A stretch of 50,091 nt of DNA from Macrostomum lignano (taxonomy: Eukaryota). The position numbers and the translations under genes were made by a program. The DNA is taken from contig NIVC01004332.1 of NCBI GenBank assembly GCA_002269645.1, forward strand, positions 1 to 50,091, in the 5' to 3' direction. Shown piece by piece: positions 9,321 through 40,580 of this stretch. Each line of letters opens with the position of its first letter. Positions within the stretch are counted from its first letter, which is position 1. The notes under the pieces were generated by a model. It saw nothing but the letters and a program-made list of their open reading frames with translations. It was not told the DNA's origin and did no database searches.

Positions 9321-12300
9321 ATGACTAGTCTACATGCCGATTTCGATAGCGACTATTATTCGACAGAGCAGGATTTGTCTTCTTTTTCTTCGGTTTTAAG
9401 TCCTACTACTATTCGAATAAGTAATAATCAGGCTAATTCTTGTCCGAATTGCAATTGCAATGGTCAGTGTCGTAGGCTTGCTGCTGCTGCTGCTGAACAG
9501 GGACCAAGTCAAACTGGTGCCAACATCGATTTGCAGCACGCTGTTGAGGTCAGAATGTTGAATAATCGTGTCAGCTTGGGTCATAGGCGGCCTAAGTCAC
9601 GGTTTCATGATCAGTTTGAGCTCATTTTTTGTTGTTGCCAGATTGAGTCATAGACAGTTTCAGTTGTTGCCAGATTGAGTCATAGACCGTTTCAGTTGTT
9701 GCCAGATTGAGCCATAGACGGTTTCAGTTTTTGCCAGATTGAGCCATAGACGGTTTCAGTTGTTGCCAGATTGAGCCATAGACGGTTTCAGTTGTTGCCA
9801 GATTGAGTCATATACAGTTTCAGTTGTGGGCAGATTGAGCCATAGACGGTTTCAGTTGTTGCCAGATTGAGTCATAGACAGTTTCAGTTGTTGCCAGATT
9901 GAGCCATAGACGGTTTCAGTTGTTGCCAGATTGAGTCATATACAGTTTCAGTTGTTCGCAGATTGAGTCATAGACAGTTTCAGTTGTTGGCAGATTGAGT
10001 CATATACAGTTTCAGATGTGGCAGATTGAGTCATATACAGTTTCAGTTGTTGGCAGATTGAGTCATAGACAGTTTCAGTTGTTGTCAGATTGAGTCATAT
10101 ACAGTTTCAGATGTGGCAGATTGAGTCATAGACAGTTTCAGTTGTTGGCAGATTGAGTCATATACAGTTTCAGATGTGGGCAGATTGAACCATAGACGGT
10201 TTCAGATGTTGCCAGATTGAGCCATAGACGGTTTCAGTTGTTGCCAGATTGAGCCATAGACGGTTTCAGTTGTTGCCAGATTGAGTCATATACAGTTTCA
10301 GTTGTGGGCAGATTGAGCCATAGACGGTTTCAGTTGTGGCAGATTGAGTCATATACAGTTTCAGTTGTTGGCAGATTGAGTCATAGACAGTTTCAGTTGT
10401 TGGCAGATTGAGTCATATACAGTTTCAGATGTGGCAGATTGAGTCATAGACAGTTTCAGTTGTTGGCAGATTGAGTCATATACAGTTTCAGATGTGGGCA
10501 GATTGAACCATAGACGGTTTCAGATGTGGGCAGATTGAACCATAGACGGTTTCAGTTGTGGGCAGATTGAACCATAGACGGTTTCAGTTGTGGGCAGATT
10601 GAACCATAGACGGTTTCAGTTGTGGGCAGATTGAGCCATAGACGGTTTCAGTTGTGGGCAGATTGAGCCATAGACGGTTTCAGTTGTGGGCAGATTGAGC
10701 CATAGACGGTTTCAGTTGTGGGCAGATTGAGCCATAGACGGTTTCAGTTGTGGGCAGATTGAGTCATATACAGTTTCGGTTGTTGGCAGATTGAGTCATA
10801 GACAGTTTCAGTTGTGGCTTGTGGGCAGATTGAGCCATAGACAGTTTCAATTGCCAGATTGAGTCATAGGTTGAGTTATACGCATTATAAAAATCTTTCC
10901 CATAATTTTGATTTCAACTTTCTAAACAGAAAATGGTGAAATTGAACCAAGAGAACTTCGATCTTCGCTTGCACTGCTATCACCTGAAAGAGAAACTGGA
11001 CAGATTAGGCCAAAGTCAGAGCAGATCGGCCGAATTAGATTCTGTAAGTTTTGATTTATTAATTAATGTATTAATTTAGATTTTTTGTTTATCAATTCGA
11101 TTCACCAGTGAGAGCAGAATTTGTCAGTTTTTGAATTATGGGGCCCTGGATTTATGCCGCTGAATTTGTGTCGGAAATAGTTTATTTATGGTGCCGTTTC
11201 CTCTGTTATTATTATTATTACTATTTGATGTGTGATATTTGCGTCGGGTGATTCTATATTCGGTTTTATTACTGCGCGTGCCCAGCTAGTTTAGCCACAA
11301 CTTTTATTCCGCTTGCGATGCAAGTTATATGCTGTGGGATCAGAATATTTTGGGATCGTAATATTGGCTTGCTAATCCGTCTATCTTTTTCTCACTGTGT
11401 TCCAATCTCCCCTCCTGTCTTCCCATCTCCCCTTCTGTTTTAACATATCCTCCTGTCTTCCTGTCTTTCCATCTCCCCTTCTGTCTTCCCATCTCCCCAC
11501 CTGTCTTCCCATCTTCCCTCCTGTCTTCCCATCTCCCCTCCTGTCTTCCCATCTCCCTCCTATCTTCCCATCTCCCTTTCTGTCTTCCCATCTCCCCTCC
11601 TGTCTTCCCATCTCCCCTTCTGTTTTAACATATCCTCCTGTCTTCCTGTCTTTCCATCTCCCCTTCTGTCTTCCTATCCCATTCTGTCTTCCCATCTCCC
11701 CACCTGTCTTCCCATCTTCCCTCCTGTCTTCCCATCTCCCCTCCTGTCTTCCCATCTCCCTCCTATCTTCCCATCTCCCTTTCTGTCTTCCCATCTCCCC
11801 TCCTGTCTTCCCATATCCCCTTCTGTCTTCCCATCTCCCTTTCTGTCTTCCCGTCTCCCTTCCTGTCTTCCCATCTCCCCTCCTGTCTTTCCATATCCTC
11901 TTCTTTCTTCCCAACTCCCCTCCTGTCGACTCACCTAGCCTTCCTGTCGAGCCTCCCCATCTGCCATTCCCATCCTAATTCGAAATCCCAAACCAAGCCA
12001 AAAGTCCCAAATTCACCCGCAGAGCCAGCAGGCCTACTGGGAGGAGGAGACCGGCCGGCTGCGGCGCGAGCTTCGCGATCAGGACGGCAAGCTGCGGGAG
12101 CTAGCCGCCGAGCGGGACTCCCTGCAGTCGGATAATTCTCACCTGCGTGACCTGCTGCAGAAGGTTGGCATTGCTTTTTTGGGAACCTAGAATTCTAGGA
12201 GATTCTGGCTTCTGGGAGATCGTACACCTGAAGCTCCAATGAGTAGCTGATGAGGCCACACCTGAAGCTCCAATAAGTAGCTGATGAGGCCACACCTAAA

Positions 12301-13187
12301 GCTCCAATGAGTAGCTGATGAGGCCACACTTAAAGCTCCAATGAGCAGCTGATGAGGTCACACCTGAAGCTCCAATGAGCAGCTGATGAGGCCACACCTG
12401 AAGCTCCAATGAGTAGCTGATGAGGCCACACCTGAAGCTCCAATGAGTAGCTGATGAGGCCACACCTGAAGCTCCTATGAGCAGCTGATGAGGCCACACC
12501 TGAAGCTCCAATGAGCAGCTTATTGAGACATCTGAAGTCTCAATTAGTAGCTCAAAATGGCACAGCTAGCTTTAATAAATAGCTGTTTCTATAAAACCCG
12601 TTTCTATGCCGTTGCTATGCTAAATTCCAATTACAGTGGGAGCAGCAGGAGTCGCCATCTGGCCTCGGCGGCGGCTGTTTGCACTATGCGCCCAGCAGCA
12701 GCACTCCCTGGTCAAAGAGCGGCGCCAGCAGTGGCGGAGCTGCTGTAACATCGGCAGCAACGATTGGCGCTTCTGCAACACCCTCTGCTGGGAGCAATCA
12801 TATTCGACACAATGGCGTTGCCGCGTCTGAGTCTGAGCGGCTGCAGCCGGCTCGAATGCTTGTAAGAGCTCATTGGATTGTTGCTTTCTAAATCGCCCAT
12901 TGGGAATTGCCATTAGGAATTGGCCATTAGGAATCGCCCATTAGAAATTGGCCATTAAAATCGTTTGCCATTCAAATTTCTAATTATAATTAAAATTATT
13001 GGTCAAAGCCAAAACGAAGCGTTTGTCAATTGCATGGCTAATTGCTGATATGTTAACCTGATAATTTGTTTCACTTGGCTTCTACTGACCGACTTTTGAT
13101 TTTCATTTTTCAAGATGCCTTCTATAGCCTGTAGTGAGGCTCCTGTGCTTGGCCAGACTCCATACCCGATGCCCAATGTAGGAATGA

Positions 13188-13233
<46 letters not shown>

Positions 13234-16200
13234 GTGTCTGTCTGTCTGTCTGTCTGGAACTATAAAATGCGCTCAAATTCTCAATCGCCGCTCATTCCCG
13301 ATCCCCCCGTCCCACGCAGCGCGATGGCAGCTCTCAGACGTCGCCAAACCATCCGACATCGTCTGACGCGGCCACTGAGGCGGAGCTGCTGCCTCTGACC
13401 TTAGCTGACCTGGCCGGCCCGCCGCTCGCTACAGGCTTGGCGCCTGGCGGCAGCAGCGTCGCGGGCCTCGACGACTCGCCTCAGTGCAACCTCAGCGCTG
13501 CCGCCGCTGCCCGAACTCTGCGCCAGCTGATGTCCCGCGTGCTGGCCAGCCAGACAGCCCTGCGCATCGCACTGGCCGACGAGGACGCCGCTGGCAGTGA
13601 GGTCGTTGACGACGATGATGAACCAACTGTTCAACAGTTCAGCGCCGCCAACAACAATGGCACAGCCAATCTGGAGGGCGACACGGGAGAATCGAACCTC
13701 CAACGTCAGGTGGCCGACGTTCGATCGGCCGCTCGACTGCTGTGCCGACAATTGGCTGTCTTGTTTGGCGGTGAGTCTCGCCCTCTGTAGCTGGCGCCCC
13801 CTCTGTAGCTGGCGCCCCTCTCTGTAGCTGGCGCCCCTCTCTGTAGCTGGCGCCCCCTCTGTAGCTGGCGCCCCTCTCTGTAGCTGGCGCCCCTCTCTGT
13901 AGCTGGCGCCCCCTCTGTAGCTGGCGCCCCCTCTGTAGCTAGCGCCCCCCTCTGTAGCTGGCGCCCCCTCTGTAGCTAGCGCCCCCCTCTGTAGCTGGCG
14001 CCCCCTCTGTAGCTGGCGCCCCTCTCTGTAGCTGGCGCCCCCTCTGTAGCTAGCGCCCCCCTCTGTAGCTGGCGCCCCCCTCTGTAGCTGGCGCCCCCCT
14101 CTGTAGCTGGCGCCTCCCTCTGCAGCTGGCGCCCCTTCTGTAGCTGGCGCCCCTCTCTGTAGCTGGCGCCCCCTCTGTAGCTGGCGCCCCCCTCTGTAGC
14201 TGGCGCCCCCCTCTGTAGCTGGCGCCCCCTCTGTAGCTGGCGCCTCCCTCTGCAGCTGGCGCCCCTTCTGTAGCTGGCGCCCTCCTCTGTAGCTGGCGCC
14301 CCCCTCTGTAGCTGGCGCCCCCCTCTGTAGCTGGCGCCTCCCTCTGCAGCTGGCGCCCCTTCTGTAGCTGGCGCCCCTCTCTGTAGCTGGCGCCCCCTCT
14401 GTAGCTGGCGCCCCCCTCTGCAGCTGGCGCCCCTTCTGTAGCTGGCGCCCCTTTGCTTGCCTACTAAAAAAATTCACTGAAGTGAGTGTTACAAACAGTA
14501 GCTATTATTTTCCAATTATTCACCACAGAGCGATCCCCTCCATCTGACGCGTCCTCAAGCGACTCCGACAACAAGCGCAGCCATCGCAAAGTAAATTTAT
14601 TAGCCATCAATGCGTCAGTGCAGACCCTATCGTTTGAACGACTGCCGGAAGTTCAGCAACTATTAGAAGAATTGGCTAGACAAAGGTCTCGAGTTGAACA
14701 ATTCACTGACGCTGTGGAGTCTCGGGCCGATGCCCTGGCTAAGGAGCGAGTTCAACCATTAGCCAGAGAGTTGGCTAAGAGCCTGGCTAGGGAGCAGGCG
14801 GAAGTGTTGGCTGTGCAGCGAGCCGAAGCCCTGGCCCGTCAGTGGTGCGAGTCTATGGCCAAAGATCGCGCCGAGATCATCGCCAGGGGACGAGCGGAGG
14901 TTCTGGCCGAATCTATCGTGGCGGATAGGGCCGAATCTATTGCCAAGCGTAGAGCGGAAGTGCTGGCCAGGGAGAAGGCGGAAGTGATAGCTAGAGATCG
15001 GCTGGCTGTTCTAACGCGCGGTATGAATGACACTCTAGCTAGGGAGAAGGCCGAGTTTATGCAGAGAGCCGAGTCGCTTGTCAATGAAAAGGCGCAGTTA
15101 TTGGGAGCGAAATTGGCCAATAATATCGCTAAGGAGAGAGCGGAAGTGCTTGCTCAACAAAGAGCGGAAGTGCTCGCTAATGAGAAAGCGGAAGTTCTTG
15201 CTCAACAAAGAGCGGAAGTGCTCGCTAATGAGAAAGCGGAAGTTCTTGCTCAACAAAGAGCGGAAGTGCTCGCCAATGAGAAAGCGGAAGTGCTTGCTCA
15301 ACAAAGAGCGGAAGTGCTTGCCAATGAGAAAGCGGAAGTTCTTGCTCAACAAAGAGCGGAAGTGCTTGCCAATGAGAAAGCGGAAGTTCTTGCCCAACAA
15401 AGAGCGGAAGTGCTTGCCAATGAGAAAGCGGAAGTTCTTGCTCAACAAAGAGCGGAAGTGCTTGCCAATGAGAAAGCGGAAGTTCTTGCTCAACAAAGAG
15501 CGGAAGTGCTTGCCAATGAGAAAGCGAAAGTTCTTGCCCAACAAAGAGCGGAAGTGCTTGCCAATGAGAAAGCGGAAGTTCTTGCTCAACAAAGAGCGGA
15601 AGTGCTTGCCAATGAGAAAGCGGAAGTTCTTGCCCAACAAAGAGCGGAAGTGCTTGCCAATGAGAAAGCGGAAGTTCTTGCTCAACAAAGAGCGGAAGTG
15701 CTTGCCAACGAGAAAGCGGAAGTTCTTGCTCAACAAAGAGCGGAAGTGCTTACCAATGAGAAAGCGGAAGTTCTTGCTCAACAAAGAGCGGAAGTGCTCG
15801 CCAATGAACGAGTTGACTCACTCGCTCGCGACCCGATCGAGGCGCTCGCCAAAGAGATGCTGGCCTCTTTTAATCGGTCGAAATCGTCCAGCAATTCGCC
15901 TCCGCCAGTCACCGACAATCCCCAGCAGCGCTCGTCGCCGAAAGCTGGCAGTAGCAGCGATCGACATCGAGTTGAACGTCAGGCCAGACGGCTTCGCTCC
16001 GAGTTGGACACATGGCGCGGCCTGGCCGAACGGTGGAAACTGGAGGCAGCCCAGTCGGATGATGCCAGAGTGGCTGCTCAGGCCCAGCTGGACAGTCTCC
16101 GAGCTGCATCTGAGCAGCTGCGACGTCAGGCTGCTGTTGCCTCATCAGCTAGCAAGGATCCAGACGCTTCCGCCGCTGTCAAGGCTGAGAACGAGCGACT

Positions 16201-16453
16201 CAAAAGCGAGCTAGTAGCGGCTGCAGCGTAAGCAGCTACTTTCTTGTACCGTCATTAAAGTACATAGGGAACTTTGTGCATACTTATGGTTACTGATTTT
16301 TTATTTCAGTGACGCTTTAAGCAGCCGAGAAGAAGCTCACAGGCTGCACGCAAAATTAGCTGCCGTGTCTGAGCAGTGCGAAGCGTTGGAGCTGCAGCTA
16401 GAAAGGTATATTTATCTGTCTCTGTCTGTCTGTCTGTGTGTCTGTCTGTCTGA

Positions 16454-16518
<65 letters not shown>

Positions 16519-18774
16519 GATCTATCTAACTATCTATCTAACCATCTAACTATCTAACCATCTAACTATCTATCTAACTATCTATCTATCCATCTATCTA
16601 TCTATTGCCAGGACCTGCACCGGAGCGGTTACGAAAATTAGATTTCTCGGTAGTTGCGCGCACTCTTTTGCACTACTTGAGTAGTTTGATTTTCGAACGG
16701 CATGGCTGGTTCCAGCAGGTAGTTCCTCTGGATAAAAGCGCTTACCGCGCCCATTGGCTTTCCAGCTGCCTTAATCGTTTCCGGTGATCTTGTGTGCGTG
16801 CATTCAGCTTGATTGGCTGCGGCAAGCAAGCTCGAAAGAGCTCGCTTCGCTCGCTCTTTCTCGCTATCTATCCATCTATCTATCTATCTATCTATCTATC
16901 TATGTGTCAATCAATTCCCCAGATTCGATTCAGCTACCCCGGCCCGCCTGCTGTCGGCAATCGAGCAGCTGAACCACCGTCTCGCCGGCATCGCCCAGGC
17001 TGCCGACGCATTCGAAGCAGCGGCGGCTCAGGCCGCAGAATCTCCTGTCGCTTCCAGTCCCCGCTGCGCAGCCGCGGCCAAGACTGCGGCAGGCATCGGC
17101 AAGCTGATCAGCCGTGAGCAGTCGCGGCCGCCACCTACTCGTCCCCGTCACGTGAGCATCGAGCCGCTACGCCGTGCCAGCTTGATGTCCAGCCCCATGA
17201 GCCGAGACAGCGGCCTGTCACCTTCTGGCATCGGCCTGCCGCCCTCCGCCGCAGCCGCTGGTGTCGAGATGTACACCGGTGGCGATGACACATCCTGCTC
17301 ATCTTCGCTGTCATCTTCCTCTGGTACGTCCACCTCGTCGGGCTCGTACTATTTCAGCCAGTCGCCATTGGCTCCGGTGCTAGTGGAGTCGTCAACTGCA
17401 GCATCGCCATCGAATTCTGGCGCCTCCGTAGCCTTGGCCCGCCTGCGAGCCGGCCTCACCGCCGCCGTGGTTGACACTGATCGGCTGGTTCGCCGATTGA
17501 GATGCATCGACGAAGCTACCGACCGTAAAATTTCTGAAGACAATAACAAGAATAATAAACGAACTGCGATTGATGCTACTGGCAGTAATAAAGTGACGAT
17601 TGGATCGCAGACTGCTAATCAATATGGTGAGTTTCGCTCCTTGTTTTCTATGTTACGCAACATATCGGTAGTCTTGGATTTTTTATTGCTTTTTAAGATG
17701 CGAGAGTTCGTCTGATTCTATTAAAAGTATAATAGAATGTGTTTTAATAATATAACAATAGAAAGTGCTTTGCTCCTCTGTGTATGTGGAAAATGATGCT
17801 TTGTCTTTATTGTTGCACAGCATATCGGTAGTTTTGGGTTTTATGCAATTTACTCTATAAAATTTTAGTTATTGTACTACAATTGGAATGCAAAATAGAC
17901 GTGGATAGGAATGCAATTAAAAAATTCCCCTTTTTTATTTTTTGTGGTCGTAAAACAGTGATTTGTTTTTTGTTATGCGCAACATATCGGCAGTCGGGCG
18001 TTTTTTCAAACTTAAACGTTTAAACCGTGCAAGAGTTCGGATATATTGTTGAGAGTATTGATGAAAATTTTATTAAATTTTTGAACCGGATTATATGAAC
18101 TGCTGCAGTTTCCAGTTTTGATCTACTAATAAGCCATAAATCATATCGCTTATCAATACTCTCGTAGCTACAAAGTCTACCTATGGCAGCAACAACGGCA
18201 GCAGTAATATGCTGTGGCTTTACTATCAACGTCTGCCTGACACCCTGAGTAAAGTGTCACCCTCCGTAGTTGACAGCAGTAGCCCACGCTGCCGCTGCTG
18301 TCATTGGAAAAATGCTACTCAATGTTATACTACTGTTAAAGGTATATATATGAGTAGTATAGAAAAAGTTCAATGTAGAATCTGCTGGCTGTTGTGCAAA
18401 CTACTGATAGTAATATGTAGCAACTTTTTAGCTTTTTTTTCTCTACCAAAGCTTTTGTGTATTTACCCTTACTGATTTTGATTAGTGTAAGGACATGGTG
18501 AACTTACTATTGTCTTTTGTACTTATACATGACTTTAGTATGTAAGGACTGCTTGTCGTGTCTTTCCTTCGAGCTAAATTACTGGATTTCTGGCCCCTTA
18601 TTTACTGATTCTAGCTTTGGCTTTCGGTGTTTTGCCTGCTCAAAAGTCGCATGAGCGATTGTACATACAGTGGCTAACCTTAATTTTTATTGCTTGTGTG
18701 TGTGTGTGTGTGTGTGTGTCTGTCTGTCTGTGTGTCTGTTTGTCTGCCTGTCTGTCTGTCTGTGTCTGTCTGTG

Positions 18775-18805
<31 letters not shown>

Positions 18806-19286
18806 GTGTCTGTCTGTGTGTCTGTCTGCCTGTCTGTCTGTCAGCCAATCGGACTACCTATTCATACGCCTATCTGTCATAAATTGGCACTCTGGTGTTG
18901 CAATAATCATTTAACCCAAACTCTCCCGTCTCCTAGAAGCATCGCATAGAAATCAGATGCAGCAGCAGCAGAAGCCACATCATCACCAGCCTTCCAACTG
19001 CCGCAGCGCAGATTTCTACCGCCTCAGCTGTGTCGGCCGCCTCGAAGACCTGGAGCTGCTCAAACGGCAGAATCGCGAGTGCTGCGCCGAGCTGAACTCC
19101 GCCCTGCTGCGCATCGACAACCGCCTGCGGCACTACGCCAGCCAGTCGGTGCTGCACAGGGCTCAGAGCGCCGATTACAATTTGTTGCGCTCGCTAAGAC
19201 GCGAATTAGCGGCGTTGCAGTGCTACTCAGAGCAGCGCAAAGCCATGCTGGATAGGTTCAGTGTTCGAGAGCTGCGGGACGACTGA
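9321..19286 (+). CDS. cnn: Gene A: centrosomin/CDK5RAP2/myomegalin-family coiled-coil protein, ~1335 aa, with N-terminal CM1 and truncated CM2. Exons 9321-9548, 10930-11043, 12023-12163, 12637-12861, 13320-13770, 14529-16227, 16310-16405, 16923-17626, 18937-19286
   Basis: All junctions are GT-AG with matching phases (0,0,0,0,1,2,2,1) and total 4008 nt, an open frame. Exon 2 [23 protein letters not shown] matches CM1 (L.KENF.LKL+IY.LEE+). The last exon [15 protein letters not shown]...MLDRF resembles the first part of CM2. The symbol is a family-level call. Confidence 0.78.
9630..10870. repeat. 32-bp minisatellite (gttgttgccagattgagtcatagacagtttca), about 39 copies, gene A intron 1
   Basis: Direct tandem repeat without spacers. 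Confidence 0.95.
11395..11935. repeat. Pyrimidine-rich ~21-bp minisatellite (cctcctgtcttcccatctccc), gene A intron 2
   Basis: Direct tandem repeat; explains the low-complexity ORFs 11340-11978. Confidence 0.9.
12225..12550. repeat. 34-bp minisatellite (cacctgaagctccaatgagtagctgatgaggcca), about 9 copies, gene A intron 3
   Basis: Direct tandem repeat. Confidence 0.92.
13189..13255. repeat. (CTGT)n microsatellite, gene A intron 4
   Basis: Seen directly. Confidence 0.9.
13781..14452. repeat. 18-20-bp minisatellite (ctctgtagctggcgcccc), gene A intron 5
   Basis: Begins 10 nt after the donor at 13770; variable C-run. Confidence 0.92.
15140..15811 (+). repeat. Coding tandem repeat: 14 x 48 bp ([16 protein letters not shown]) in gene A exon 6
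   Basis: 672 nt equals 14 x 48 and stays in frame. Preceded by degenerate 8-aa units from about 14725. Confidence 0.92.
16410..16605. repeat. (TGTC)n/(TATC)n compound microsatellite; a further (TATC)n at 16862-16900
   Basis: Seen directly, gene A intron 7. Confidence 0.9.
18693..18842. repeat. (TG)n/(TGTC)n microsatellite, gene A intron 8
   Basis: Seen directly. Confidence 0.9.
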
Positions 19287-19477
19287 CTGGACAGGTTCTG
19301 GGGTGCTGTGAGCTGTGCAAGTGTACCTGTGTATTTTAAGTGCAGAGTATTGTTGATGACGGTCTTTAAAGTGATTAATTAGGATTGGTTGATAGAATAT
19401 ATGGTGCTCGTATGATATTGAAAGTTTGGATAGTGTGAAATGCAAAGGGAGACTTGCATAGGTTGGATGGGATGGGA

Positions 19478-20235
19478 TCAGAAATCAGAGGGTGAGATCA
19501 GAGGGGATGAGATCAGAAATCAGAGAGGGTGAGATCAGAGGGGATGAGATCAGAAATCAGAGAGGGTGAGATCAGAAATCAGAGAGGGTGAGATCAGAAA
19601 TCAGAGAGGGTGAGATCAGAAATCAGAGAGGGTGAGATTAGAAATCAGATAGGGTGAGATCAGAAATCAGAGAGGATAAGATCAGAAATCAGAGAGGGTG
19701 AAATCAGAAATCAGAGAGGGTGAGATCAGAAATCAGAGAGGGTGAGATTAGAAATCAGAGAGGGTGAGATCAGAAATCAGAGAGGGTGAGATCAGAAATC
19801 AGACGGTAAGATCAGAAATCAGAGATGATGAGATCAGAAATCAGAGATGATGAGATCAGAAATCAGAGAGGGTGAGATCAGAAATCAGACGGTGAGATCA
19901 GAAATCAGAGATGATGAGATCAGAAATCAGAGATGATGAGATCAGAAATCAGAGAGAGTGAGATCAGAAATCAGAGAGGGTGAGATTAGAAATCAGAGAG
20001 GGTGAGATCAGAAATCAGAGAGTGAGATCAGAAATCAGATAGAGTGAGATCAGAAATCAGAGAGGGTGAGATTAGAAATCAGAGATGATGACATCAGAAA
20101 TCAGAGAGTGAGATCGGAAATCAGAGAGGGTGAGATCAGAAATCAGAGAGGTGAGATTAGAAATCAGAGAGGGTGAGATCAGAAATCAGAGAGTGAGATC
20201 AGAAATCAGAGATGATGAGATTAGAAATCAGAGGG
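19478..20235. repeat. ~22-bp minisatellite (gagatcagaaatcagagagggt)
   Basis: Direct tandem repeat downstream of the gene A stop codon. Confidence 0.92.
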
Positions 20236-21511: not shown

Positions 21512-21542
<31 letters not shown>

Positions 21543-21914
21543 GACTTTTTCATAACGGCTCAATAATCTTGCATTTTTACTCCCTTGTTAAGCGCAAGCG
21601 GTTAATACTATAACTCAATGCTTTTTAATTATGCTGTAATTGTTTGTCAATGCAAAATAGAAACGTTTATTAAGCGCAGTACAAGTTAGGCTGGCTATGT
21701 TTTCAGTTACGTTTTTTGTTGGCCTATAGGTATGCGCATTAATGAAGTTCTGCCTAAATTTCAATGACACCTTTTCATTTTCATTAGATTGGTTTTTATT
21801 CGGGGAAAGACGCCGTTTCGTCTAAAGAGGGCGCCATTTCTTTTTAGCAGCAAGTTTTTACGACCTAAACTACTTTGTAAGTGGCGCTAGAAGTTCCAGG
21901 AAGGGGTGCAGAAG

Positions 21915-23703: not shown

Positions 23704-23710
23704 TATATAA
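23704..23710 (+). promoter_or_regulatory. Candidate TATA box (TATATAA) of gene B
   Basis: About 105 nt upstream of ATG 23813. Confidence 0.4.
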
Positions 23711-23812
23711 GCAAACCAGCTTGGGCGGAAAAGCTGTTGTATGTTTTACTCAACAATAGTTAAAAACTTTGTCGGTTCTCTCTGTTATATCATTTCATAA
23801 TCATTATACCGC

Positions 23813-24083
23813 ATGGCAACAATGGCCCAAGCTAGTGTTGAAGAGGTTAGTTCACAGGAAACTCGACTAATGCACAACGGTTCTTCGACTATTGTTACTG
23901 CTGTTGCTGCTGCTGCCGCTGTTGAAGAAGCGCCTGGAACTGATGGACAAGATGATGGAGCTGCTGGCGTTTCAGTGACTGTTGGGCAGCAGGTGAGCAT
24001 ATTCCCGAAGCTATGTATCTATCTATCTATCTATCTATCTGTCTATCTATCTATCTATCTATCTATCTATATATCTATCTATA

Positions 24084-24157
<74 letters not shown>

Positions 24158-30100: not shown

Positions 30101-33100
30101 GCACAGATTGGCTAAAAAAGAGAGATAGGGGAAGAGAGCAATAGCAGCGCCAAGTCCGAGCGAGGAACACTACTTCTGCTCATCTAGTCCAGAGTGCAGT
30201 GGTGAGTCCTGCCTCCCTGATGAAGATGGCACTCTCTAGCGGTGCGTGTCCTGTCCAATCCTGTGGAGGGTAGAGCTGTCGGAGGGTAGGGATAGGGAGC
30301 TGGGGCTGATAGGTAGGAAGAGGGGATGCCGTGAGGACTGAAGGGAAGAGAAGTGTCCATCCCGTTCCTCCCTGAGTTCACAGCTCGCACGATTCTCTCA
30401 ACCCAAAATTCATCAGCCGATCCAAGTCAGAATTCAAAAACAAAAAGCAGGTCAATGCCGACTAAATTACTGCTACTAGAACAAGATTCTCTCGAGAACA
30501 AACATGGAATCAGAAGAGAACAGCAGCAGTAGTATCATTATTGACGTGAATTCGTCAGACAGCAGCCAGCTGTCCCGACTGCACGTGTACATCGGGGGCG
30601 AACGGTTCAATGGTGACGTCACCTCAGACACCGACTCCGCTCTCGCAGGTTGTCAGGCCGCATCGTCGCAAACCAACTTCACAAAGCGGCAGCAGCATCA
30701 GCAGCTTCAGCAATACTCTACGAGTCTGCAGGCGGATGCTGGACAGTCTCAGCATCATCAGCATCGAGTTTGCGAGCTCACTATCGCCGGACTCAAGGCC
30801 GCCCTGGCCGACGCCGAGCACGCAGTCGGGCGTCGGTCAGCAGCTCGCACAGAGGAGATCCGCCAGCTGACGTTCGAGCTGCGCGGGGTGCAAGCCAGAC
30901 TGGCGGCGAGTCAGGCTGATGAAGCTCGGATGCGGGAGGAGAGAAGGAAGCTGAGCGTGAGGCTGGGCTCATGGGGACAATCTAATACTATGTTGAGAGG
31001 CTGTGGTGTTCGTTGCTAAGGGGATTCGCTTTTGGGACTCAGTTGGGATTCATTTGGGATTCATATGGGATTCAGTTGGGATTCAGTTGGGATTCATTTG
31101 GGATGCAGTTGGGATTCATTTGGGACTCAGTTGGGATTCATTTGGGATGCAGTTGGGATTCATTTGGGACTCAGTTGGGACCCATTTAAGATTCAGTTGG
31201 GATTCAGTTGGGATTCATTTGGGATTCATTTGGGATTCAGTTGATAAAAATTTTGGATTCATTTGGGATCCATTTGGTAATCAGTTGGGATTCAATTTGA
31301 GATTATTTTGGGATTATTTTGGGATTCAGTTGGGATTCCTTTGGGAATTTTTTAGCACTGTACTCTAACAATGTACTTTAACCAACGTACTTGAAACAGT
31401 GTAGCTTAAACAATGTACTGTATGTAACAATTTAATATTAAAATCTACTTTAAAATGTACTTAATATTTAATATTTAATATTTTTACACTTATAATTTTA
31501 TTTTTTACTGTACTTGAAAAGTGCTTCAAACTCTGAGCTATTACCAATCAAAAGAATCAATTCCGGATGGGTCCTCACAAAAAGAACGCGCACGCAAAAA
31601 ACTCCCCCCGTCCCTCAGGAGGCCAACGAGCGCCTCGTTGACGAATCCTCCGAGCTCCGCCGCCAGCTGGACCGGGCTCGCGCCGAGGCCGCCGAGGCTG
31701 CCGACGCCGGACGCGAACTCCGTACCTCGCTAACCGACTTACAATCTGACAAAGCCGAACTGCTGGCTGGGCTCGAGGCCGTCTGCTCCGAGAAAAACCG
31801 TCTGCATGAGCGATTGAGCTGCCTGGAGGCTGAGCGAGCTCGACTCGCTGAGGTGTCGGCGGAGGCCTCGGCAGAGCTGTCGGCGCAGCGTCAGGAACGC
31901 GTGGAGCTGCGGCAGCGGCTGCAACAGGCGGAGTCGGCGGCTGCGTCCGTTGAAGCGTCCAAGGCTCGATGCGTTGAGCTGACTGAGCAGCTGCGGATGA
32001 CGGAGCGAAGGGCGGAGAGTCTGATGGAGGCCCGGGACGCCGCTCAGGTTGGTTCCTTTGACCTTCTTTGACCTCTCTTGTTTTGATTTGAGGGTTTCAC
32101 GGAAAGACGTTCCGAGTGACGCATAAGTTGTCCTTGGATTCATAATCTACTTGTCCATTGTCTCTTAATTTTTTTTAAAGAAGAAAAACAATTTTTAGTA
32201 CTTTGTTTTCTTAGAAACTATTTTTTTCATTGTGGCCTTTTAATTTGTCAAAGCCTAATTTTTATTCAATTATTTTCTTATTTAACGGTTATTTTATTTT
32301 GTATTATCGAGGCCACGATGTATTTGCATCATAATTTCTTAGAAAGACGGACATTATGTACGATATAATGTTCAGGAAAATCAATCATTTCATCTTTTAT
32401 AACTTCCTAAAAATTCAGTCATTTTATAGGACATAATTTCCTAGAAAATCAGAGATTTAAACGATTTAATTTCTTAGAAAACCAATCAATTTCATTCATG
32501 TTTTGTTATTAATATTTAATTTAATTTATTCTTGTTTCTAAGAAATCAGGTCATTTTCTTTTTTCTTAGAAAAGTATACTTCTACGAATTCAATTTGTAC
32601 AAAAAATAATAAGCATCCCAAACCAATCCGCAGGAATCCCTAGAAAAGTGCCGATCATACCAATCACAACGCGACCGCGACTACCAAGCGGCACTTGACG
32701 CAACCGCCGCCCTGGAGGAGTCGCTGTCAGTTCAGCAGGCGTCAGTAGCCCGGCTGAGCAGCCACTCGGCAGAATTGGAGCGTCAGAAACTTCAACTAGC
32801 CGACGCCTGCGTTCGTTGGAGCGATCAGCACGCCGAGACTCAGGCAGCTCTGGACACCGCCGAGTCAAGGATCCAGCAGCTCAGCGCGGAGAGAGATCAG
32901 CTTAAGTCGCGTCTGGATGACTTGACCGACGCTTGGGATGAGGTTGGGGTTGCGGCCTTTGCTTTTGCTGGTTCGGTTGGAAACGGGGGGTTAGACAGTT
33001 ATCCTGCGTAACCTGTTAGACACACCTGTGATATGTTAGACACACCTGTGATATGTTAGACACACCTGTGATATGTTAGACACACCTGTGATATGTTAGA

Positions 33101-36100
33101 CACACCTGTGATATCTTAGACACACCTGTGATATGTTAGACACACCTGTGATATGTTAGACACACCTGTGATATTTTAGACACACCTGTAACCTGTTAGA
33201 CACACCTGAAACCTGTTAGACACACCTGTAACCTGTTAGACACACCTGTGATATGTTAGACACACCTGTAGTTATCTGTTAGACACACCTGCAACCTGTT
33301 AGACGCACCTGTAGTTATCTGTTAGACACACCTGTTAGACACAGCCCCGATAAAAAATTTCAAAATTTCTTATCAACTTTATTCTTCTTTTGTAAATAAA
33401 TCATGGAAAATGTCATTATTTCTACTTTTTATCACAAATAAGTAGTATAAAAAGCAAATTAGAATTCAACAACAGAAAATCCAACAACTTGCCAGGTTCG
33501 CGGCGAAGTGGAAACCGGCTACGGGGCCCGGGCCAGGCTGCAGTCCGAGCTGCGCGAGTCGCAGGCGGAGGCGGCCACCTGGCGAGCCAGCTGCCTGCAG
33601 CTGGAGGAGGAGCGCCGCGGCCTGGAGCATCGGCGAGAAACCTTGGAAATTGAGCGAACTCGGCTGCAGACTGAACTGGCCGAACTGCGCTCGGAGCTGC
33701 AGAATCGAGAGACTGCGACTTCTAGGCTGGCCTGGGAGAAGGAGCAGGTACAGCTGGAAATTTACTGTCGGCTTTTTATAACAAACAATAAATTTTTTTC
33801 TCCCATATAGCTTATAATTTAGCTAGATACATGTATAGTAAGTTTAGAACTTTTAATATTTTCAAGATTTAGCACTTTCTTAGAAATAAAAAGTCTTGTA
33901 TAAAATTTGCTTTCTTAGAAAATTTATTCTAACAGCTTTTCTAAGAAATAAAGCATACGCTTCTAAGGAACTTCTTTTCAAGAAAGAAAATCTGGTTCAG
34001 TCATTTATTACTCTTCATTTTAACTTGCACTTATCATTTTTTAAAATTGCATTATTTGTTTTTCTTGGAAAAATTCGATAGAACTTCTTAGAAACTATAA
34101 GAATTCCATTTTTTATTTTAACCTTTGAGCAAAGCAAAGTGAGTTGTATTGACTTGAACTTTTTTACAATCGTGATTTTTAGCTCACATTTTTATTAGAA
34201 ACGATTCCCACTTTCTGAGAAATCACCCAATATTTTGAATGTCTTTCTGTCACATAAAAAATCCGGAAAAAATTAACTACTTGAAAACGGCAAAAAAATC
34301 AAACTGCTTCCCAGACCGAGCAACAACGCACCGAGCTTCTTACTGAAGTTGATCGCCTCCGATCTCAACTATCCGCTGCCGACGCTGCTTCTCGTTGTCA
34401 TGGCAACAACTGCGCCGCGGCCGTCTCAGTGCAGCAGCAGCAGCAGCAACTGGAGGCTGTGCAGCGGTCGTTTTCTGAATTGTCAGAAAAATGGGAGCGA
34501 ACTTTAGAAGAGAATTCGGTGCTACAGGGCACAGCGATTGAGTTAAGGACTAAACTCAATAGCCGAGCAATGTGAGTTGTTATTTATTGATTCATAAAAC
34601 TAAAATTTGCTTTCAAAGACTATGCGCAAAATTTCCTCTATTTGAAGCGAGTGAAATGGTGAGTTGCAAACTTAATAATTTCCTAACTATACTACTTATT
34701 TCAGTTTAAGTAGGCAAGTAACGAGTTAAAGCAACTTTTTATTCAGATCAAATACAGGTTCTAAAGTAGCTTTAGATACGTTGACTGACTACAAAGCCTA
34801 TCGAATTTGATTGTCAGTAGTAGGTTGTGTTTTCTTTGAATTTTTTTATTAAAACAAAGAGAAAAACTATTGTTTATCTTTTTCTTTTCAACGCACGCAG
34901 CCGACTGGACCAGTGCATGGCTGAGAATGCCCGTCTTCGGGACCTGCTGCGCAAAGGCCAGCAGAGCAGCTCTCGCATGGCCATCGAGTTCGGTTCCAAC
35001 ACCAGCGGATTCAGTGAAACAACAGTCTCCGAAACGTGAGCAATATGCTACTGAAGCAGCTTTTTCTTAGAGCACAATTCGTAGGAAGCTTTCTTAGAAA
35101 TCTGTTTTTCCTAGAAACCTAACCATGAAAAAGTGATTTTCTTAGAAACTTAACCACGAAAAAGTGATTTTCTTAGAAATTATCCATGAAAAAGTGATTT
35201 TCTTAGAAACTTAACCATGAAAAAAGTGATTTTCCTAAAAACTTAACCATGAAAAAAGGGATTTTCCTAAAAACTTAACCATGAAAAAGTGATTTTCTTA
35301 GAAACTTAACCAAGAAAAAGTGATTTTCTTAGAAACTTAACCATTAAAAAGTGATTTTCTTAGTAGCTTAACCATGAAAAAGTGATTTTCCTAGAAACTT
35401 AACCATGAAAATGTGATTTTCTTAGAAACTTAACTATTAAAAAGTGATTTTCTTAGAAACTTAACCATGAAAAAGTGATTTTCCTAGAAACTTAACCATG
35501 AAAAAGTGATTTTCTTAGAAACTTAACCATGAAAAAGTGATTTTCCTAGAAACTTAACCATGAAAATGTTTTTTCTTAGAAACTTGACTATAAAAAAGTG
35601 ATTTTCTTAGAAACTCAACTATGAAAACGTTATTTTCTTAGAAACCATGCAATCACGTGTATTTTATGCATAGATACCCTTTCTACACACTTTAGTATAA
35701 AAAATGCATTAAGGTTTTATAGATAGACATGCTAGTAAAAAGGTCTCCATTGAACTAGCTTACTAAGGTACCCTCACATTAATTGTTCTTTGCAGCATCC
35801 TTGAAGAGAAGAACCGCCACATCCAGAGGCTTCTGGCTCAGATCAGCCGGTTGACAAGTGTGCTGAAATCTACCAGTTCGCTTGGCGGCTCAGCCTCCGA
35901 GCTGCATCAGCAGAGCCTGTCCGACAGTCGGCCAGCCACTCCGTCTCCAAAGTTTGCAGCTTCATCGGAGGCTGTGTCGGCAGCGGCGGCTGTCACGTCG
36001 TCAGCGTCTAGCGTTGTTGGCTGGCGAGGCAGTCAGGCAGAGCATTTGAGAACTCGTGTTTTGCAGGTGAGCACCTTTCTTGATCAATATGTCAGCGTTT

Positions 36101-39100
36101 TCTAAAGTTCAATTTTTTTTAGGTTTGTGAGTCTTGGTGCTTTGTGAGGCTTGGTGCTTTGTGAGGCTTAATGCTTTGTGAGGCTTAATGCTTTGTGAGG
36201 CTTGGTGCTTTGTGAGGCTTAATGCTTTGTGAGGCTTAATGCTTTGTGAGGCTTAATGCTTTGTGAGGCTTGGTGCTTTGTGAGGCTTGGTGCTTTGTGA
36301 GGCTTAATGCTTTGTGAGGTGAGGCTTGGTGCTTTGTGAGGCTTAATGCTTTGTGAGGCTTAATGCTTTGTGAGGCTTAATGCTTTGTGAGGCTTAATGC
36401 TTTGTGAGGCTTAATGCTTTGTCGGGCTGGCGCTTGTGAGGTTTGGCACTTGGTGAGGCTGGCGCTTGTGAGGCTTGGCACTTTGTGAGGCTCTGTGAAA
36501 GTGATCCATTGGGTAGAATGCTCTATTTATTATATCTACCCACACTACGAATATATTATCCCAAACAAGGATCTGGAATACTAAAGTAATGTTCTAGTGG
36601 TCCTTTTATTAGACTTTAGGAACTGCAAGTAAACTTGCTGTCATTTGAAATTTTTTTATTTTAAGACTTTCTTAAATTACTATTCTCTTCGTTATATACA
36701 CTATAAGTAGTTTTCACTGGTCAACTATGTACTTTGAAATTTTCTAATTCTGCATGCATACATTACTAATTAGATTAGAAAGCTACTAAAAGTAGTGTTA
36801 TGGCTTATAATAGCTTTAATTATACGACAATCCGCAGGTCCTAGTCGAGGCTCTTCAAGCCGAGCTCTCATTAAAGGAGGACCTGTCTCAGCTGATAGCC
36901 GGCCTGCCAGAAGACTGGCAGGCCACCCTGAACCGGCGAGTCACCGAACTCGCCGATCTGCGTCGTCGACTTGGCGACGTGCTGTCGGATATTGAGCTGG
37001 CGGCGAGGCGGCTGCGCGACCGAGGCGGCGAACTGGCCGCCCAGCTGCACCGCCTGGAGCGGGAGAATGCCGGCCTGCGGGATCGGCTGCGGACTGGCGG
37101 CGGCTCTGCCGGAATTTCCGCTCCGTTGACCCGTGAGTTTCTTAGAAACATCAACCGCTAAGAGAGTACGCGCACGATTTTTTTGAAATAGTAAAACAAA
37201 TTTTGGATGCCGTGTAGCCCAGTGGTCTGGCGCGGCGCTCTGATGCCGATTCCAAGTGCAGTCACATAAATTTGGGGCTAAATTGGAATCTGTCAGGGGA
37301 GTCAGCGAAATAGGCAGTAATGCCTTCTCGCCCGGCTGTGTGACAATGTCGCTTCTTAAAGTGCGCCAGGGTGCACGATGAAATCGGTACCAAGGCCAAG
37401 AAGCGTCCCTTAGTCACTTGCGTCCCGGCGCGTTGCCACCGGGTGGGGGGACACAGGGGCGGACATGTCCCCCTAGTAAAAGCTCTGGGGGGGACATGCC
37501 AATGCTTTGTCCCCCCCAACCCCACCTTGTGAGTCGTTGTGGTAATTAATAATTTTTCTTCAGGACGCCAAAATATAGCGCTTTCGGCGCCAAAATGAGT
37601 GCCTGCGGCGCCAAAATGAGTGCCTGCGGCGCTAAAATGAGTACTGCGGCGCCAAAATGAGTGCCTGCGGCGCTAAAATGAGTGCCTGCGGCGCTAAAAT
37701 GAGTGCCTGCGGCGCCAAAATGAGTGCCTGCAGCGCTAAAATGAGTGCCTGCGGCGCTAAAATGAGTGCCTGCGGCGCTAAAATGAGTGCCTGTGGCGCC
37801 AAAATGAGTGCCTGCGGCGCTAAAATGAGTTCCTGTTGCGCTAAAATGAGTGCCTGCGGCGCTAAAATGAGTGCCTGCGGCGCTAAAATGAGTGCCTGCG
37901 GCGCTAAAATGAGTGCCTGCGGCGCTAAAATGAGTGCCTGCGGCGCTAAAATGAGTGCCTGTGGCGCCAAAATGAGTGCCTGCGGCGCTAAAATGAGTTC
38001 CTTTTGCGCTAAAATGAGTGCCTGCGGCGCTAAAATGAATGCCTGCGTCGCTAAAATGAATGCGTAAATGAGGGCCAAAATTTAGTCATGTACATGTTGA
38101 ATTCTTGGCTTTGTCCCCCCTCAGATCCGTTTTCGCGATTTTAAAATTATTTTATGTAGAAAAATTTAATTTCAGAAAAAATTTTCGTATAAAGGAACAC
38201 AACATCATTTTTCACTGAAAAATTAGTCTAATAAATTTGTCACGTGATTTGATAGTCTACTTAAATAGTAGACTATTTAGTTGCAGAATGATAAAACAAA
38301 AAACTTAGTTAAAACACAGTCACCAGTTAGAATTTACTCTTTGTAAATGTACACCATTGTTGTGGTTTTGTCTCGCATAGAGACGCCTAACCGCAGTACC
38401 CTGTGACACTTGTCTCTGCCTGGCTGAAAACTTGTAATGAGTTAGTAGGCTGGGTTGGAGGGTAATAGTCGATCAGGAAGGGCTGTGGGTAGCTGTATAG
38501 GAAGGCAGGCCTATACCTGTTCCAGTTGGTGCTCTGACGGTCCCCCTCGGAGTGCCATCTGAGCGAACAGCCAGCGACCCTATTAAAGCTGGAGTGTGCC
38601 AGAACCAGGACTGAGTCTGAGCAGGACGAGACCGTTGGCACGGTCACCATAGAAATGGTGGGTTGGCGAAGCAAAGGGTGAAATAGTCCCGGCGATTAGC
38701 CCTCCTGCCGCTTCAAAGATAAGAGACTGTCTTGGCAAGAGTACCCGGGGTTTAGTTGGGGGGGGGGGGAGGCTCCTTCGGTTGCCACGGCCGTGGGGGC
38801 GGTCATATGACCGGTTTTTTGGCTCTACTAACCCTGGTGAAGGCACGGGCTTCCCTGATTGGTTCTCTCAACCCCCTCTGGCCCCGGGAGGTTTTGATCT
38901 GAGCTTGGAGTAGGTTTAACGCCCTGAAGGCAGGGGGTAGGGCCCGCCCTTTGCCCGACTGGTGTTGCCTGCTCAGCTTGTTGGCCACAGTCACTCTCAC
39001 TCTAGCTTGGAAACCTTGTGTACCTGAGTACACTCCTAATCTGGAACCTTAATTATTACTAGTGGCGTAAGAGCCTGCTCAATGGCTCAGGCGCCGGATT

Positions 39101-40580
39101 ACTTATTTAGTTTAGTTTTAGTTAGTACACCATTGTTGTAAAATATCTTTCGGAAACAATGCGTTTAATGTCAATACGCCTACTTAGAGTAGACACTTAG
39201 CAATCTAGACGAAAAAATTGCGAATTCTCTCCAATCAGGACGCCGCAGCGTAGGTCCCACCACCGAGTCCACCGATCTGCTGCTGCACGCCGTCTGCCGG
39301 CTGGACGACTTCGAGCTGCTCAGAAAAGAGTCGCGCGAAAATCTTCGAGAAATACGCAGCGCCAAAAATCGAGTAGACGAACGCGCTACGCACTATAGAA
39401 GCCTGGGCGTGCTGGAGCGATCGCAGAGTGTGGATTACAGCTTGTTAAAGCATCTGGCCAGAGAGCTGGCGGGAATCCAGTTCTATGCTGAGGAGCGCGA
39501 CAGGCTGCTCAATAAATTCTGGATTTGCGAGCTGCCGCCATGGCTGTTCATAGTCGGCAGGTGCGAATTCATTAGCAAAATGTGTCCCCCTGAATCCAAT
39601 CTGCAATTCCTAGAATCGAATCCCCAATTCCTAGAATCGAATCCCCAATTCCTAGAATCGAATCCCCAATTCCTAGAATCGAATCGCCAATTCCTAGAAT
39701 CGAATCCCCAATTCCTAGAATCGAATCCCCAATTCCTAGAATCGAATCCCCAATTCCTAGAATCGATTCGCCAATTTCTAGAATCAAATCCCCAATTCCT
39801 AGAATCGAATCCCCAATTCCTAGAATCGAATCGCCAATTCCTAGAATCGAATCCCCAATTCCTAGAATCGAATCCCCAATTCCTAGAATCGATTCGCCAA
39901 TTCCTAGAATCGAATCCCCAATTCCTAGAATCGAATCCCCAATTCCTAGAATCGAATCCCTACTTCCTAGAATCGAATCCCCAATTCCTAGAATCGAATT
40001 CCCAATTCCTAGAATCGAATCCCCAATTCCTAGAATCGAATTCATCCCCGATTCCTAGAATCGAATCCCCAATTCCTAGAATCGAATTTATCCCCGATTC
40101 CTAGAATCGAAATTATCCCCGATTCCTAGAATCGAATCCCTTATTCCTAGAAACGAATCTTTAATTTCTAGAATGGAATCCACGATTCCTAGAATTGAAA
40201 GTAACCCTAGAAACGAATGTAGTTTTCTTAGAAATGAAATGGAATTCCTGGAAATTCACAACTAATCTTCCAAAATCGTAATTCGAATTCTCTGACGCAA
40301 CTAATCGAAATCCCCGATATTCTCCATCCCGTTATCAAAGGCCCGCTATTATCACCAGTACCTGCACCAGGGCTCAGCCAAGCCCAACCTTGAAGCGGAG
40401 CGCTGGAAAGGTCGCTACGCGGCTCTCAAAGAAATGCTCGAACAGCGACTATCAAGCGACGAGGCCCGATCGGTGTTCAATGAGAATTTCTCCGGAGCCG
40501 AGACGCTGCTTTCGGTTGCCAGACACAATCTCGAACGAGCCTCATCTCCGGCTGAAAGCGCGTACACCGTGCACTTTTGA
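23813..40580 (+). CDS. Gene B: centrosomin-family coiled-coil protein, ~1293 aa, full CM2-like C-terminus, no recognisable CM1. Exons 23813-23992, 24274-24375, 25136-25673, 29521-29637, 30514-30956, 31619-32047, 32634-32942, 33496-33747, 34315-34571, 34901-35035, 35796-36066, 36838-37132, 39239-39552(or 39560), 40341-40580
   Basis: GT-AG junctions with consistent phases (0,0,1,1,0,0,0,0,2,2,0,1). Long heptad-type helices. C-terminus [15 protein letters not shown]...[11 protein letters not shown]...[12 protein letters not shown] resembles myomegalin/CDK5RAP2 CM2 (H.LG.I+DY.AL; L+..FW...LP; .L..AR.NLE). The last junction is uncertain and the 30514 acceptor is weak. Confidence 0.72.
24013..24160. 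repeat. (TATC)n microsatellite, gene B intron 1
   Basis: Seen directly. Confidence 0.92.
24535..25100. repeat. ~32-33-bp minisatellite (cgcctgttagacacacgtgttagataatacct), gene B intron 2
   Basis: Direct tandem repeat. Confidence 0.9.
25750..25900. repeat. Dispersed repeat, second copy of 1830-2025 (with an internal deletion)
   Basis: Shared sequence blocks with 1830-2025. Confidence 0.7.
26049..26362 (-). mobile_element. tRNA-derived CORE-SINE, second copy
   Basis: Diverged reverse complement of 5978-6290, including A/B boxes, CORE-like domain and tail. Confidence 0.88.
26803..27714 (-). CDS. Intronless secreted protein, 303 aa: signal peptide, PAN/apple-like Cys domain and LamG/ConA-like (pentraxin-type) domain; nested antisense in gene B intron 3
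   Basis: [19 protein letters not shown] signal peptide; S...CAFLCSQ...C..WS....C apple pattern; [51 protein letters not shown] are typical LamG-like motifs. Confidence 0.88.
   Translation of the reverse strand: MLLLLPLLLGLLFCLGANAELHSSISLGGCVVPQTPQHSLTASSARMCAFLCSQLRRPCITWSHRAGVCNMSDSLQTASLTNDTDCQAWSALRQLGLVAFWPMSNATRTRNAVSNSGHLDLQENIPMQYTDSAVNFTGQSGVSERFNIDELTSVCLTSFTMSVWVKVTNPARGAMPLLEGLTMPSSCHTRFWLHPTTTDIEFTVASKVRVSGPTDTASGWTHIAAVYDKQTPEIRILVNETRQATSGSATALTSCVNFGSSVQIGAVSRNAGHNRVFQGFMRCFGVSERALSDSEVALLQGLC
28040..28255. repeat. 24-bp minisatellite (cttgtctatggtcaatactcccaa)
   Basis: Direct tandem repeat, about 9 copies. Confidence 0.92.
29030..29345. repeat. CT-rich low-complexity tract
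   Basis: Seen directly. Confidence 0.85.
29685..30025. repeat. 18-bp minisatellite (aaccttcaccaaaaccag), gene B intron 4
   Basis: Direct tandem repeat. Confidence 0.92.
30185..30390 (-). mobile_element. Possible LINE ORF2 C-terminal relic
   Basis: One minus frame ends [16 protein letters not shown], preceded by scattered C/H residues resembling a decayed CCHC motif. Weak evidence. Confidence 0.3.
31035..31345. repeat. 10-bp minisatellite (ttgggattca), gene B intron 5
   Basis: Direct tandem repeat. Confidence 0.9.
33005..33345. repeat. 20-bp minisatellite (acctgtgatatgttagacac), gene B intron 7
   Basis: Direct tandem repeat; shares tgttagacac with 24535-25100. Confidence 0.9.
35095..35645. 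repeat. 31-bp minisatellite (ttttcttagaaacttaaccatgaaaaagtga), gene B intron 10
   Basis: Direct tandem repeat. Confidence 0.92.
36130..36495. repeat. 17-bp minisatellite (gctttgtgaggcttaat), gene B intron 11
   Basis: Direct tandem repeat. Confidence 0.92.
37565..38065. repeat. 21-bp minisatellite (gcgctaaaatgagtgcctgcg), gene B intron 12
   Basis: Direct tandem repeat. Confidence 0.92.
38364..39124 (+). mobile_element. 761-bp GC-rich non-autonomous retroposon-like insertion with 15-bp target-site duplication
   Basis: GTACACCATTGTTGT at 38349-38363 and 39125-39139; 3' stem-loop GGCG..GAGCC/GGCTC..CGCC; TTTAG-like tail; no coding capacity seen. Confidence 0.72.
39595..40200. repeat. 21-bp minisatellite (aattcctagaatcgaatcccc), gene B intron 13
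   Basis: Direct tandem repeat; produces the spurious LESNPQF extension of ORF 39409-40104. Confidence 0.92.

Follow-up and report, generated by a model that had tools for sequence, protein, structure and literature searches.

Adjacent centrosomin-family genes of Macrostomum lignano that may divide the family's usual end motifs

Contig NIVC01004332.1 of the flatworm Macrostomum lignano (assembly Mlig_3_7, GCA_002269645.1), the entire 50,091 bp of which we analyzed and refer to as the window, carries two adjoining genes on the + strand, A and then B, whose sequences place them in the centrosomin (Cnn)/CDK5RAP2/myomegalin family. Through CM1 these proteins bind and activate the gamma-tubulin ring complex; through CM2 they are directed, in flies and humans, to the centrosome or the Golgi and build scaffold. 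Current models have Cnn/CDK5RAP2 couple, in one molecule, the nucleation of microtubules through CM1 with targeting and scaffold assembly through CM2. The reading that we favor, at a probability of roughly 0.55, is that A and B are two separate, adjacent paralogous genes that divide these usual end motifs between them. On this reading, gene A encodes a coiled-coil protein with an N-terminal CM1 that ends just past a conserved box and has no CM2 helix. Gene B encodes a coiled-coil protein without CM1, in which a short helix-like tail of strongly diverged sequence sits past the box, at the CM2 position. We propose that A acts as a nucleator adaptor and B as a targeting or scaffold subunit, that the two may associate through their coiled coils or the duplicated box, and that small indels close to the 3' end of exon 9 cost A its CM2 exon.

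A preliminary description of this DNA had already proposed such a pair. What it observed held for gene A, for CM1 and for the shared box, and did not hold for how much of CM2 is missing from A, for the reading frame of B or for the CM2 ascribed to B. Its interpretation is likewise supported in part, by the adjacency of the genes, the sister relationship of their boxes, the presence of CM1 in A only and a vestigial splice donor in A, and a working CM2 in B is not established.

CM1, the shared box and family membership

We assembled the model of gene A manually, guided by splice sites and reading phases, and compared its junctions with the deposited proteins (Table 1). It starts at the ATG at 9321 and is identical to PAA47795.1 (P0006). 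Exons 1 and 2 together match the Pfam profile Cnn_1N (PF07989) with an expectation value (E) of 3.9e-7; their score of 30.6 bits exceeds the gathering score, which is 28.5, and the core of the motif (ENF.L+L) lines up with KENFNLKLRIYFLEERM in the human CM1 chain 8rx1_G. Counting against the call, the repeat-trimmed full-length protein (1111 amino acids) scores 28.2 bits over profile positions 7-71, just below the cut-off. On these scores, the CM1 of gene A is real but borderline. A spiralian CM1 profile, made from seven homologues and searched over all six-frame fragments of the window, found its sole match in A exon 2 (E 2.3e-4) and then, weakly, in A exon 3. Cnn_1N had no match at E up to 10 in the exons of B, upstream ones included, and the six-frame profile found no CM1-like stretch in the exons or introns of B or in the A-B spacer. 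These results agree with the earlier claims that A carries a CM1-like motif and that B does not, and the undiscovered CM1 exon that gene B might have held was looked for in all six frames of the window without being found. Another family domain, CC_CDK5RAP2 (PF23246), was absent from the Pfam matches of both A and B at E up to 0.01.

The two genes are tied together by the box that precedes CM2. The last exon of A and the penultimate exon of B share 49% identity over 84 amino acids (E ~1e-20). With phmmer, the A box matched spiralian homologues at domain E of 2.8e-6 to 1.2e-3 (search space of 1000 sequences), and BLASTP with the B box gave E of 1.3e-8 to 4.7e-15, with Gigantopelta at 5e-15 and Haliotis at 3e-12. 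Across BLASTP and phmmer, the lowest E is 1e-15 for B and ~3e-6 for A, and the box of B is the better conserved. A profile restricted to 102 box columns, with the last exon of B outside it, was then searched against a library of 1.84 billion representative proteins, where it recovered 13 remote proteins beside two M. lignano clusters, at E of 4e-10 (best 4.3e-10) to 9e-4. The 13 are mostly 1300-3700 amino acids long, two being fragments of 197 and 287 amino acids, and the box lies ~90-190 residues before their C-terminus. They come from molluscs, an annelid and a brachiopod, where their sources call them myomegalin-like or Cnn_1N domain-containing, and one entry from a scorpion (Centruroides) carries an unrelated name. 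Cnn_1N was present at 65-75 bits in three of the four box-bearing proteins put through Pfam, with CC_CDK5RAP2 also in two of those three. Because the box matches proteins that have Cnn_1N and myomegalin-like names, we assign A and B to the centrosomin/CDK5RAP2/myomegalin family. A weak precomputed Pfam match of B, to Pde4dip, counts in the same direction. Box homology and the gene models together bear out that they are adjacent members of it on the same strand, as had been proposed, and the premise that the family carries CM1 and the C-terminal domain on one chain holds in the relatives tested for CM1.

In a tree of the box (91 columns), A and B are sisters relative to the mollusc, annelid, brachiopod and chelicerate homologues in 200 of 200 bootstraps. 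The A box has the longer branch, with 23-31% identity to the outgroups versus 33-42% for B. Since A and B are sisters on the box, at least the box exon was duplicated within the lineage. Outside the box, A and B have no detectable similarity, and a search for family landmarks beyond CM1 and the box gave nothing significant in either gene. With no landmarks outside CM1 and the box, a whole-gene duplication is therefore indistinguishable from an exon duplication combined with fission. Of the earlier proposal of a duplication followed by complementary domain loss, the duplication stands for the box exon, through the sister grouping, and is not established for the whole gene.

The locus and the structure of the two genes

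The A-then-B order is kept on a second contig, NIVC01000218.1, where the copy of A is ~1.4% diverged from that of the window across the aligned A exons. The annotation, which derives from RNA-seq, deposits A and B as two separate coding sequences, with a combined length of 2586 amino acids. Only the A copy on the other contig received the automatic name Cnn_1N-containing; the B-type entries in UniProt are without a family name (A0A267DF51, 'Uncharacterized protein'; A0A1I8I9W6, 'FHA domain-containing protein'). The two copies of A differ at 19 synonymous and 19 non-synonymous sites, which gives a ratio of non-synonymous to synonymous differences per site (pN/pS) of 0.34 (binomial p = 0.0009). 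Gene A is therefore under purifying selection and is no decaying pseudogene. A separate argument for constraint, from exon identity of 96-100% against 88-93% in the flanks, was dropped, because unique non-coding DNA is 97-99% identical and the tandem arrays had lowered the value for the flanks. The run of in-frame repeats in exon 6 is similar, not identical, in the second genomic copy of A. Its 16-residue unit also produced a spurious Pfam match (Gp5_trimer_C) on a single A exon, which we rejected; the other single-exon Pfam matches were coiled-coil noise only.

To place the end of gene A relative to CM2, we used a profile of the full C-terminal domain made from 15 sequences. The best solved structure for this profile is the CM2 of fly Centrosomin (5I7C, 5MVW and related entries; E 0.0012), and the alignment is confined to profile positions 107-168, the part after the box. 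Fly CM2 has been defined as about amino acids 1064/1082-1148 (PMC5760045), and a human 'CM2-containing' deletion removes the last 168 amino acids (PMC7658699). As the crystallized fly CM2 aligns only past the box, A lacks CM2 entirely, not by half. Gene A keeps the initial portion of the region as broadly defined in humans but nothing of CM2 as crystallized, so the earlier statement that A stops halfway through CM2 is right only for the broad region of ~168 amino acids and wrong for the crystallized fly domain, which lies wholly in the part that A lacks.

The DNA around the stop of A suggests how this end arose. Nine bases past the stop lies a vestigial CAG/GT (here and below, the slash marks the exon boundary), at the site that matches the donor of B, and directly ahead of this vestigial donor A lacks 1+5 bases relative to B. 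This fits a truncation of A by small indels with loss of the downstream CM2 exon. Searches with tblastn, a profile and blastn over 19287-23812 turned up no relic of the last B exon. The second genomic copy of A (P0003, NIVC01000218.1) has the same protein end, and the model of gene A from the ML2 assembly (P0004) has nothing past the final box exon. P0004 itself ends in ...KAMLD at a possible donor, GATAG/GTTCAG (19256/19257), upstream of the stop of A; its predictor may have spliced onward from there, and a matching downstream exon was not found.

Our model of gene B equals the deposited PAA47796.1 at 100% identity from METRHHH on, over the deposited exons from 25136 to 39560. The GenBank protein is truncated at its N-terminus and frameshifted at its C-terminus. 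An upstream exon at 24274-24375 is backed by the ML2-assembly protein P0005 and by the second contig. A further putative first exon, at 23813-23992, is present on the second contig with in-frame indels and occurs in no deposited protein model. The deposited B protein begins at the first Met within exon 2, and the ML2 model is open from its beginning at 24274. The spliced leader of M. lignano, 35 nt long, has ATG as its last three bases (PMC8629364). B may take its start codon from it, as the leader ATG would be in frame if the transcript were trans-spliced at 24274.

The tail of B and alternative readings

Several observations weigh against two genes that divide CM1 and CM2, and we consider them here together with the alternatives. 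The end of B is broken in this contig. It had been described as ending in two peptides, one of 11 residues (39505-39537) and one that contains LL..AR.NLE (40506-40535); both are present on the + strand, and they sit in different reading frames. The annotated intron (donor 39560, acceptor 40341) leaves them unjoined, with the donor in phase 2 and leading into the wrong frame, and PAA47796.1 ends in the frameshifted tail PAIITSTC...EPWRIL. The ML2 proteins P0002 and P0005 read PPWAVHSRQ/ARYYHQ... across this junction, where the window gives PPWLFIVGR/. The last B exon is therefore out of frame, and the deposited tail frameshifted, through one missing G at 39541-39544, which may be a residual PacBio/Pilon assembly error or mark a real null copy. 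In the LL..AR.NLE frame the last exon is clearly coding, with codon-usage log-odds of +33 bits versus -27 in the annotated frame. A contig search with P0002 found no contig that encodes this protein, and the 3' end of B was read on one contig.

The first alternative is that A and B form a single complex locus, as fly cnn and human PDE4DIP do. Exon 9 of A would then be an alternative terminal exon derived from the box-exon duplication, the first exons of B would be reached by an internal promoter or a spliced-leader acceptor, and a full CM1-to-CM2 isoform would be produced by splicing from A exon 8 into B. The annotation consists of RNA-seq 'transcriptional units' cut at trans-splice and poly(A) sites, and a common name prefix is given to units that cluster at 95% identity (PMC5730564). 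On the other contig, the A copy goes by the name Mlig002088g1; the B of the window is Mlig002088g4. Because A and B share this prefix without having such nucleotide identity, we infer from the naming rule that at least one assembled transcriptional unit spans both genes. The donor of A exon 8 (17626) is in phase 1, as are the B acceptors 29521, 30649 and 39239, so an in-frame fusion of CM1 to the tail is possible. The combined length of A and B also compares with the 2100-3700 amino acids of spiralian orthologues, similarity confined to the box is what successive parts of one ancestral gene would be expected to show, and alternative promoters of human myomegalin give rise to isoforms that have CM1 and isoforms that lack it (PMC3575658). 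We nevertheless judge a single locus rather unlikely. The protein collection searched yielded six M. lignano proteins, from two assemblies, and none of them is a CM1 + CM2 fusion, and the annotation pipeline split the unit into two genes. The spacer of 4.5 kb, ~2.4 kb when tandem repeats are subtracted, exceeds the 1-kb threshold for operons (PMC8629364), and a phase match is expected by chance for one in three acceptors.

A second alternative accepts two genes and denies that CM2 was partitioned. Neither gene would have a working CM2, the last exon of B would have drifted or been replaced, its LL..AR.NLE resemblance would be chance, and A and B would be diverged paralogues that share only the box. 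The last exon of B fails each stand-alone test: the spiralian CM2 profile gives it 3.8 bits versus 23.8 for fly CM2, hhalign returns E 0.11, and a shuffled sequence does as well as its best BLAST score in 51 of 200 cases. Relative to the homologues, a gap of ~14-19 residues falls in the middle of the CM2 helix, and phmmer with the B tail against solved structures (PDB) gave no match, with only the family profile reaching Cnn CM2. The complete CM2-like end that had been claimed for B has no statistical support in these stand-alone tests. On the other side, the exon sits at exactly the expected position, its coding signal lies in the frame of the terminal motif, and phmmer alignments from four homologues run on 40-45 residues into it. 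The ending LL..AR.NLE fits the family pattern (V/L)L..A(K/R).N(L/F/M)E, located 10-15 residues before the C-terminus, and the fly segment that matches this pattern holds L1137, which is needed for centrosome recruitment (PMC5760045). We consider it quite unlikely that neither gene has a working CM2. The homology of the last B exon to CM2 is weak and inconclusive, and its support is drawn from position, from partial collinearity and from the terminal motif.

It is very improbable that the early end of A, or even the split as such, arose as an artefact of assembly or annotation. A frame problem of one base is proven for B on this contig, which belongs to a short-read-polished PacBio/Canu assembly of a repeat-rich, highly duplicated, recently polyploid genome, but the stop of A and its 6-base (1+5) gap lead to the same protein end on the independent, diverged contig, P0004 also stops at the box exon, and the gene order is identical on both contigs.

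The coordinates of both genes and of other features of the window are collected in Table 1.

Table 1. Features of the A-B locus on contig NIVC01004332.1
Feature	Position	Strand	Remarks
Gene A, PAA47795.1, BOX15_Mlig001840g2	9321..19286	+	9 exons, 1335 amino acids
Gene A exons	9321-9548, 10930-11043, 12023-12163, 12637-12861, 13320-13770, 14529-16227, 16310-16405, 16923-17626, 18937-19286	+	GT-AG, consistent phases
CM1 (Cnn_1N) of gene A, borderline	10930..12109	+	Core in exon 2 (10930-11043), second half in exon 3 (12023-12109)
Coding tandem repeat, gene A exon 6, in frame	15134..15807	+	48 bp x 14, 96% matches (Tandem Repeats Finder); 16-amino-acid unit x 14
Box preceding CM2, gene A copy	19023..19274	+	49%/84 amino acids to B; spiralian phmmer matches
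Gene A stop TGA, then vestigial donor CAG/GT	19284-19286; GT 19295-19296	+	DNA alignment of A exon 9 and B exon 12
Gene B, PAA47796.1, BOX15_Mlig002088g4 (P0001)	about 23813/24274-40580	+	
Putative B first exon (MATMAQ...VGQQ), use uncertain	23813..23992	+	Open frame, ATG, CAG/GTGAGC donor
Gene B exons	24274-24375, 25136-25673, 29521-29637, 30649-30956, 31619-32047, 32634-32942, 33496-33747, 34315-34571, 34901-35035, 35796-36066, 36838-37132	+	
Nested open reading frame, 326 amino acids	26806..27783	-	Laminin_G_3 (PF13385), E 8.5e-15; inside B intron 25674-29520; no part of the centrosomin pair
B exon 12, box preceding CM2	39239..39560	+	Library profile search, BLASTP
One-base deficit	39541..39544	+	TGGC here, TGGGC implied by ML2 proteins (TGGGCT vs TGGCT)
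B last exon at CM2 position (ARYYHQ...VHF, then stop)	40341..40580	+	

The window DNA is eukaryotic in character, with GT-AG introns and a tandem array inside nearly all of them. The arrays (9631-10869, 11395-11927, 12224-12520, 13781-14451, 19497-20235, 21912-23255, 24571-25099, 29693-30025, 31031-31346, 33014-33335, 35106-35645, 36124-36492, 37585-38063, 39592-40199 and 40783-41422) occupy nearly all introns of A and B, the A-B spacer and the 3' flank of B, with periods of 11-95 bp and up to 56 copies, and many of them have several open frames and look like exons. The start of the nested Laminin_G_3 frame resembles a signal peptide, and the ML2 models P0002 and P0005 wrongly fuse an antisense translation of this frame into B. 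Upstream of the pair lies an inverted repeat of ~580 nt (774-1355 and 3868-4447; arms 98-100% complementary), each arm of which holds an open reading frame starting MKVLCFCLLALLAMQVSEQ. It looks like a gene for a small secreted protein duplicated head to head.

Implications and comparison with known systems

If the gene-level separation is real, it allows a test of whether CM1 and CM2 must act on the same chain, and M. lignano is experimentally workable, with RNA interference and transgenesis established (PMC5730564). The furthest-reaching version, an obligate two-gene centrosomin system in which a CM1 nucleator and a CM1-less targeting or scaffold subunit are translated from separate mRNAs and come together in trans, possibly via the duplicated box, we regard as unlikely. 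Were it true, such a system would be a natural experiment in which CM1 and CM2 need not share one chain, and it could represent a halfway stage on the way to losing the family, as planarians and parasitic flatworms did. A split pair would bear on how flatworms reshaped or lost centrosome genes; M. lignano, reportedly according to Azimzadeh et al. 2012, keeps its centrosomes. In planarians, loss of CEP192 and of Cnn-related genes correlates with loss of the centrosome (PMC4799839), and the connection of the split pair to centrosome loss is indirect.

Among spiralians, the proteins of Haliotis asinina (XP_067661683.1, P0008), Patella caerulea (KAK6175111.1, P0013) and Lingula anatina (XP_013408886.1, P0018) carry a CM1 of the same type as A. 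The spiralian myomegalin-like/CDK5RAP2 proteins have the C-terminal box LDDFE...SVEYS.L.EL...FW..LPP, as in A and B, and their terminal helix ends VL..A+.N(L/F)E, as in B, although the M. lignano helix has strongly diverged. In these proteins a single chain of 2100-3700 amino acids carries CM1 together with the complete C-terminal domain, whereas M. lignano has the motifs on two chains of ~1300 amino acids each. CC_CDK5RAP2 is found in P0008 and P0013, two of the three spiralian proteins tested, and has no match in M. lignano A or B.

The CM2 of Drosophila Cnn (5I7C/5MVW/5MW0/5MW9/5MWE) is the best solved structure for the family profile that includes B, and Cnn has VLRNVRSNME where B ends LL..AR.NLE. 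The Cnn CM2 corresponds to the segment after the box only, of which A has nothing and B a version that is not significant alone. Fly cnn separates the motifs through alternative isoforms of one gene. In human myomegalin (PDE4DIP), which has the forms CM-MMG and EB-MMG and short CM1-only forms, CM1 polypeptides and CM1-less C-terminal polypeptides coexist and have different roles (PMC3575658). EB-MMG contains SxIP motifs that bind EB1, and none were found in A and B. The human forms come from one gene with alternative promoters, whereas M. lignano has two annotated genes with a duplicated box exon. A literature search found no published account of a split centrosomin pair. A gene-level split with a duplicated box exon is a variation on the known separation of the motifs at the level of isoforms, and not a new kind of system.

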